Shown here one piece after another: positions 27,409 through 62,589 of a stretch of 64,000 nt of DNA. The DNA is from Macrostomum lignano (Eukaryota): NCBI GenBank assembly GCA_002269645.1, contig NIVC01000013.1, forward strand, positions 806,001 to 870,000, read 5' to 3'. The notes below the pieces were generated by a model that saw only the letters and a program-made list of their open reading frames with translations, ran no database searches and had not been told where the DNA came from. Made by a program: the position numbers and the translations under genes. Numbering within the stretch: position 1 is the first letter of the stretch; the number at the start of each line of letters is the position of its first letter.

Positions 27409-62589
<35,181 letters not shown>

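Follow-up and report, generated by a model that had tools for sequence, protein, structure and literature searches.

Through its top loops 1 and 3 the C2D domain of mouse otoferlin binds two calcium ions, and this binding determines release probability and, apparently, how cooperatively hair-cell exocytosis depends on calcium (PMC12526402). Cryo-EM located residues D1052 to D1060 in top loop 3 and defined the two calcium sites of the domain: site 1 is formed by D990 and D996 of loop 1 together with D1052 and the carbonyl of Q1053 of loop 3, site 2 by the carbonyl of A989, D990, D1054, and D1060 (PMC12526402). The C2D knock-in mutations D1060A, D990A, and D990A/D996A lower the release probability in mouse, and in one tested C2D mutant calcium cooperativity is lost, the calcium dependence of exocytosis being linear (PMC12526402). 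Loop 1 of C2D lies opposite loop 4 of C2E, the sole interface thought to be calcium-sensitive (PMC12526402). In mouse otoferlin the long loop 3 of C2B puts Leu341 and Leu342 into the membrane, and molecular dynamics suggested a contact between the hydrophobic C2D top loop and the membrane.

Alternative exons are known from OTOF (exons 6, 31, and 47/48) and from dysferlin (exons 5a, 17, and 40a). To our knowledge, the described ferlin alternative exons are located in linkers or at the C-terminus, none of them inside a calcium-binding top loop, and our literature search returned nothing on a ferlin exon in a calcium-binding loop, an otoferlin microexon, a Macrostomum otoferlin, or a microexon combined with a C2 calcium loop. 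Neuronal microexons are 3-27 nt long and belong to an SRRM3/4 eMIC-dependent programme of bilaterians. The exons of the C2A-C2B linker are described as alternative in ferlins in a preprint (bioRxiv 10.1101/2025.03.15.643383). The otf1+ cells of planarians are neurons that have otoferlin as their marker (PMC7749135).

We analysed a 64,000-nt stretch of DNA of the free-living flatworm Macrostomum lignano (hereafter the window), corresponding approximately to positions 806001-870000 of contig NIVC01000013.1. Its minus strand carries a ferlin gene which, judged by its similarity to known ferlins, is of the otoferlin type. A gene model based on a pseudo-protein of all minus-strand ORFs compared with solved structures was too coarse, and full-length homologues were used instead. 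Tblastn with full-length otoferlins resulted in ordered exons from ~57230 down to 27412 on the minus strand, including the Ferlin_C and transmembrane exons. In the full-length protein search the top database matches bear the name otoferlin, and the best match among solved structures was otoferlin with 173 bits vs 133 bits for myoferlin and 124 bits for dysferlin. The initial protein search returned fragments only, with 41-55% identity and none from M. lignano, and the M. lignano otoferlin of this locus was absent among the protein matches listed, including those of the full-length search. The GenBank record NIVC01000013.1 has no called gene in the part of the window comprising the ferlin 3' exons (23025-33024). 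On the ORF of the exon upstream of the segment studied here Pfam detected FerB (101 bits) and then a C2 domain (32 bits), and its position right after FerB identifies this C2 domain as C2D. The features around loop 3 of C2D are as follows, in the order of the minus strand, with slashes marking exon boundaries.

42673..43572, minus strand: upstream coding exon, FerB and N-terminal half of C2D, with the loop-1 acidic residues and the first two loop-3 aspartates; ends ...VEIFDEDQV
42664..42672, minus strand: donor of the upstream exon, GTG/GTGAGTAAC, score 5.5; opens the phase-0 intron that splits loop 3
41957..41962, minus strand: candidate branch point CTGATC, the A (41959) being 22 nt ahead of the exon; fits the general consensus yUnAy
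41938..41955, minus strand: polypyrimidine tract and acceptor, TTTTTCCTATCCTCACAG/, acceptor score 8.2
41911..41937, minus strand: candidate cassette exon, ACTTCGGTGCTCGGTGGACAGCAAACT, encoding TSVLGGQQT, phase 0-0
41905..41910, minus strand: donor GTGAGT of the candidate exon, score 2.6
41880..41885, minus strand: UGCAUG, Rbfox-type motif, intron positions +26 to +31 past the candidate exon
40800..41910, minus strand: downstream intron, 1111 nt, AT-rich, with no second copy in the window (self-blast, GC profile)
40332..40799, minus strand: downstream coding exon (tblastn), starting GGCAAGTCGGAATTTCTTGGC = GKSEFLG(R), with the fifth acidic ligand (E, equivalent of mouse D1060) and the remainder of C2D
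Predicted inclusion form across both junctions: GACCAAGTG-ACTTCG...CAAACT-GGCAAGTCG

The tblastn alignments of four homologues (P0001, P0062, P0063, and P0103) stop at 42673, the end of the upstream exon, where the sequence reads ...GTCGAGATTTTCGACGAAGACCAAGTG, also written ...GAAGACCAAGTG, followed by /GTGAGTAAC. The likely acceptor of this exon is cacaaacag/GAAATG at 43572, its start being approximate. The downstream exon follows a weak acceptor at 40799 (CAACGCAAAATACTGTAG/, score -4.9) and its donor after 40332 is GATCTC/gtacgt. As consecutive residues of the tblastn homologues fall exactly at 42673 and 40799, the skipped form corresponds to the canonical junction and the 27 nt are in phase 0-0. 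The original prediction had claimed a 27-nt segment with a strong acceptor and a GTGAGT donor, phase 0-0, between FDEDQV and GKSEFLGR, and this was confirmed on the minus strand. The segment, flanked by CTGATCATTTTTCCTATCCTCACAG/ on the acceptor side and /GTGAGTATA on the donor side, has a canonical AG acceptor and GT donor, keeps the frame and is stop-free (codons ACT TCG GTG CTC GGT GGA CAG CAA ACT). The introns around it comprise 735 and 1111 nt, giving an intron of 1873 nt when the 27 nt are skipped, and the CTGATC element would serve as branch point of the 27-nt exon. A repeat or transposon origin of the intron was discarded, as self-blast revealed no other copy in the window. Rfam gave zero matches on the window, and neither the 27-mer nor the skipping junction was found in metagenome scans.

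A second otoferlin-like model of M. lignano (P0210, UniRef A0A1I8F1Y4) shares 73% identity with the C2D region of the window. It is uninformative for a comparison of the loops as it jumps from ...FYFNEQTAIK to MPFDKPEFLGR, leaving out strand 6 and loop 3, which is probably an artefact of annotation or assembly.

The placement of the insert in the Ca2+-binding loop 3 of otoferlin C2D, also part of the original prediction, agrees with the alignment to the mouse ligands. D-E-D-Q-V/G-K-S-E of M. lignano aligns with D1052-Q-D1054-S-M/G-K-A-D1060 of mouse, so that the nine extra residues fall between the equivalents of D1054 and D1060, at the tip of loop 3. Alignments with all three solved ferlins have a nine-residue gap exactly at the insert. 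All five acidic positions (mouse D990, D996, D1052, D1054, and D1060) are kept, the fifth being Glu instead of Asp, and the C2 profile score is 39.1 bits with the insert vs 47.7 bits without it, the cut-off of 22 still being passed. The idea that the insert splits the acidic ligands and could switch sensing was right about its position between the D1054 and D1060 equivalents but overstated in its consequence: strands 6 and 7 carry the acidic ligands at their ends, and the insert thus lengthens the tip from 5 to 14 residues and removes no ligand. The loss of a calcium site through the insert is not established. The mouse C2D knock-ins affect the same loop and the same ligands; whereas they are engineered point mutations in a mammal, the Macrostomum insert would be a natural lengthening by nine residues that leaves the ligands in place.

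We then compared the segment with what the gene and the intron would provide by chance, scoring splice sites with generic consensus tables that are not trained on M. lignano and suited to ranking only. The candidate ranks first of 49 in-frame, stop-free candidates in its own intron. With an acceptor score of at least 8.2 and a donor score of at least 2.6 it is also the one 3-60-nt segment found on the 64-kb minus strand. Using full-length homologues, 14 real donors of the ferlin gene and their acceptors were mapped. GTGAG is present in 9 of these donors, and the candidate donor score lies inside their range (-1.1 to 7.0). The candidate acceptor equals the best mapped real acceptor of the gene (45238), the other real ones scoring -4.9 to 4.6. 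The sense strand of the gene contains 16 GT[AG]AGT hexamers, and at least 8 of these serve as real donors. The GC content of the 27-nt body is 0.556, compared with means of 0.545 for the mapped exons and 0.325 for its own intron; this value is reached by 1.8% of the 27-mers in the own intron and by 7.8% in 11 mapped introns. The encoded TSVLGGQQT is rich in Gly, Ser, Thr, and Gln, whereas decoys of the same intron are rich in Lys, Ile, and Phe. UGCAUG occurs in 10 copies across the 30-kb gene vs ~7 expected, and the copy downstream of the 27 nt is therefore weak, post-hoc support. All features together, the segment looks like an exon rather than random intron.

The same numbers bear on the explanation that the 27 nt are a chance pseudo-exon, that is, intron in which splice-like signals happen to enclose a GC-rich stretch that is unused or included as splicing noise. 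Shuffling the dinucleotides of the 30-kb gene region 200 times gave an expectation of 0.04 in-frame open candidates as good as the observed one when both sites had to match it, and of 0.195 per 30 kb when the summed score was used, which for a post-hoc scan of the entire gene is an appreciable chance level. The antisense strand of the window carries two non-coding segments that are equally strong at the same thresholds, neither of them in frame and open. Because the scan was post hoc, chance keeps a share of the probability. It would, however, have to account for the coincidence of splice strength, exon-like GC content, frame, a polar, Gly-containing composition compatible with a loop, and a branch-point match. 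We consider a chance pseudo-exon unlikely, if still a serious competitor of the cassette exon, and return to it below with the comparison across species.

A phase-0 intron is found at the same position in Lottia, Paralvinella, Xenia (a cnidarian), Branchiostoma, and Trichonephila, and mouse exon 27 begins at GKADFMGR according to a primer description (PMC12526402). Shared by all these animals, the loop-3 intron is ancient. The search of the orthologous intron suggested along with the original prediction had a divided outcome, as the intron is kept in the five non-mouse genera but contains nothing like TSVLGGQQT in them. An insert at this junction is absent from all 18 close homologues (0/18). 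The D-x-D-x-x-G spacing is fixed among ~175 gathered ferlin sequences, a set with dozens of predicted isoforms from vertebrates, isoforms from molluscs, and one monogenean flatworm; only two teleost isoforms depart from it, by the absence of one Val. When 1.84 billion cluster representatives were searched exhaustively with the C2D region of Lottia (P0015) as query, 158 C2 stretches were aligned, loop 3 being without indel in 128 of them. The ~175 otoferlins without the insert are in line with a chance pseudo-exon, as are comparable candidates in the long Branchiostoma intron.

Three observations concern the same junction in other animals. In Branchiostoma belcheri the homologous 5.9-kb intron contains an 18-nt in-frame segment encoding DTSKQV (locus L004, 6916-6933) with an acceptor score of 10.3 and a GTAGG donor, which may be a decoy or a further microexon confined to its lineage. 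Predicted teleost isoforms differ by one Val, DQDT[V]GKAE (Solea solea X3, P0159, vs X1, P0175; stickleback X3, P0147), a variation that most likely results from tandem donors. Like the Macrostomum candidate it changes the length of loop 3 at the identical junction; unlike the candidate it concerns a single residue, involves no separate exon and is predicted. An insert of 16 amino acids in the beetle Molorchus, modelled as two tiny predicted exons with poor splice sites, was discounted, and this model demonstrates that tiny unsupported exons in the same intron can be artefacts of the predictor.

Among the exceptions with an insert in loop 3, counterparts were identified in two other flatworms. 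In the cestode Schistocephalus solidus two UniRef entries (A0A0X3NX87 and A0A0X3NUA3) read FFDIDGS-EDKSKQGYVKS-SGLNYLGR and a third one (A0A0X3Q4T3) reads FFDIDGS-SGLNYLGR. The entries differ by these 11 residues (EDKSKQGYVKS, 33 nt) only: the 994 residues before the site are identical, and the identity to A0A0X3Q4T3 after the site extends over 301 residues in A0A0X3NX87 and 1191 residues in A0A0X3NUA3. None of the S. solidus otoferlin entries lists a genome contig, and they probably originate from a de novo Trinity transcriptome (PMC4891850). A retained GT-AG mini-intron was dismissed as source of the insert because the peptide allows no register GT...AG; the insert may stem from a cassette exon or from the use of an alternative 3' splice site. 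The C2D loop region is present on neither of the two S. solidus loci (L008 and L009) and falls in an assembly gap. On the first of them (contig UYSU01032862.1, L008 20449-20314) residues 798-849 align in reverse orientation amid the N-terminal part of the gene, which suggests a misassembly of the scaffold or gaps.

In the trematode Dicrocoelium dendriticum the gene model CAH8587972.1 reads DIDPG-TGTL-NELEFLGR. The tetrapeptide TGTL is encoded by a separate 12-nt exon, ACTGGGACACTG, at L010 59639-59650, located between ...cctcctatcattactgattacag/ (acag/) and /gtaggt. The upstream exon ends GGG/gtgagt at L010:49093 and the downstream exon starts from 61299, so the 12-nt exon lies in the homologous intron of 12.2 kb, where it ranks second of 622 candidates. 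The annotation holds the inclusion form only, and the exon may be the predictor's call. Models of Trichobilharzia lack an insert, and the monogenean Cichlidogyrus casuarinus has lost the loop-3 intron, LYDKDMIGDPEFLGR being contiguous in the genome (L007 4349-4393).

The S. solidus isoforms resemble the M. lignano candidate in being flatworm otoferlins with the GRCFC(E/K)P signature and an in-frame insert at the junction equivalent to V/G. They differ in that the insert has 33 nt instead of 27 nt and no similarity to TSVLGGQQT, and in that the fifth ligand position is Asn. The D. dendriticum exon shares with the candidate its very small size, its location as an exon of its own in the homologous phase-0 intron, a pyrimidine-rich acceptor and a GT donor, and the addition of residues to loop 3, but it has 12 nt, resides in a 12.2-kb intron, and is known as a gene model. 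The Macrostomum and Dicrocoelium exons both begin with ACT (Thr) and both have Leu at position 4. As the three insert peptides are not convincingly alike, their homology is positional only. For the 27 nt there are thus positional counterparts in S. solidus and D. dendriticum and no sequence conservation. From probable transcripts in the one case and a gene model in the other, the two species appear to vary the same otoferlin loop-3 junction by splicing. This argues against a chance pseudo-exon, since the M. lignano intron carrying the candidate, which makes up ~7-8% of the gene's intronic sequence, is exactly the one where these two other flatworms add residues.

The comparison also bears on whether the 27 nt might be a constitutive exon, always included, in which case loop 3 of M. 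lignano C2D would simply be longer and no isoform switch would exist. Both splice sites of the candidate equal or exceed in strength those of the constitutive exons beside it, and the acceptor that follows (40799) is weak; constitutive inclusion would also match the sole Dicrocoelium model with its included 12-nt exon. S. solidus, in contrast, shows both forms, the Trichobilharzia models are without the insert, and the canonical length of the loop is otherwise strongly conserved. Moreover, very short exons between introns of 0.7-1.1 kb are commonly skipped without activators. We therefore rate permanent inclusion as improbable and favour an exon that is alternatively included.

The acceptor might also have a use other than that of a cassette exon, be it spliced-leader trans-splicing, a short isoform with its own alternative first exon, or a transient intermediate of recursive splicing. 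Its score of 8.2 is unusually strong for the ferlin gene, M. lignano trans-splices many mRNAs, and short isoforms of human OTOF start inside the gene. A trans-splice acceptor, however, needs neither a consensus donor 27 nt further on nor a kept frame; the 1.9-kb intron is far below the sizes known for recursive splicing, and the sequence carries no promoter mark. Such a use is very improbable, which leaves the alternatively included cassette exon as the preferred reading.

With 27 nt, a multiple of three, and its position in a folded domain of a protein of synaptic vesicle fusion, where it would extend a surface loop, the candidate resembles neuronal microexons. It differs from them in that the insert is not conserved outside flatworms, and from SRRM3/4 microexons in that it lacks a close UGC and has a strong rather than a weak polypyrimidine tract. 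An SRRM4-type UGC was not found, the 40 nt before the AG being free of TGC and the nearest copy located ~43 nt upstream. Lacking the upstream UGC and having a strong polypyrimidine tract, the 27-nt candidate is not filed under the SRRM4 class. A neuronal use of the exon is plausible by analogy with the planarian otoferlin neurons. With the known alternative exons of ferlins the candidate has in common that it would be an in-frame alternative exon in the same gene family; unlike them it is located inside a top loop.

Other parts of the ferlin gene contain possible alternative exons as well. Two related terminal exons lie in tandem at 28030-27853 and 27586-27412 (minus strand), each coding for a C-terminal segment, a transmembrane helix, and a stop. 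A tttcag acceptor precedes each of them, 119 of 179 nt are identical, and they look like alternative last exons, as in human OTOF 47/48. Further short in-frame segments with good splice sites are located on the minus strand at 49266-49255 (12 nt, SRPK, in the C2B-C2C linker, where homologues are rich in Lys and Pro), 36722-36711 (12 nt, KFVE), 48527-48477 (51 nt), and 44788-44744 (45 nt), and some of these may be real small exons.

Outside the ferlin gene the window contains an LRR and TIR-like receptor gene at 20198-23024 (minus strand; P0059, 914 amino acids) with one intron of 70-80 nt near 22436-22358. Its ORF 20198-22318 (minus strand) is 100% identical to BOX15_Mlig030947g1, a 'hypothetical protein' of Macrostomum lignano, and another LRR-like ORF is present at 24749-25426. 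ORFs at 4175-11346 (plus strand) resemble, by eye, a cys-loop ligand-gated channel with the ligand-binding part from 4175 and the transmembrane part at 10444-11346. Minisatellite arrays give rise to long spurious ORFs on both strands at 4800-5400, 6441-7164, 7792-8315, and 11380-12159, and further arrays with spurious ORFs are located at 47875-48531, 57644-58073, and 62766-63779.

In summary, we hold with moderate confidence that M. lignano otoferlin has a genuine cassette exon in these 27 nt, alternatively included and located in the phase-0 intron that splits loop 3 of C2D. From the genomic sequence we infer both its inclusion in M. lignano mRNA and a regulation of this inclusion, which the strong splice sites and the downstream UGCAUG would perhaps aid. 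Skipping would yield the canonical loop D-E-D-Q-V-G-K-S-E, whereas inclusion would place TSVLGGQQT between V and G. The longer loop would be floppier and would alter, probably lower, the calcium affinity of the second site (equivalents of D1054 and D1060), while the new Val-Leu tip would change the contact of C2D with the membrane or with the neighbouring C2E. Effects of the insert on calcium affinity and membrane contact are likely, and cells including the exon would have a tuned calcium-dependent vesicle fusion. We put forward more tentatively, and regard as less probable, that an alternative exon of the loop-3 intron (27, 12, and 33 nt) is old, rapidly evolving, and common to Rhabditophora, and that neurons use it to switch how sensitively or how cooperatively vesicle fusion responds to calcium.

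If the exon is unused, the segment is merely a good-looking decoy in an unannotated gene. If it is real, it would be the first described ferlin alternative exon in a calcium-binding top loop, as far as the searched literature shows. M. lignano is amenable to RNAi and transgenesis, making the idea of such an exon testable, and a used exon would provide a ready-made pair of C2D domains for a comparison of calcium and membrane binding. A lengthening of loop 3 between two ligands by splicing would then be an evolved, reversible version of the engineered C2D perturbations, and, by analogy with mouse, a natural change of loop 3 could plausibly tune release probability or cooperativity, the properties affected there. 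Should the switch indeed be shared among flatworms, the property it changes would be the one altered by engineered C2D mutations in mouse hair cells.
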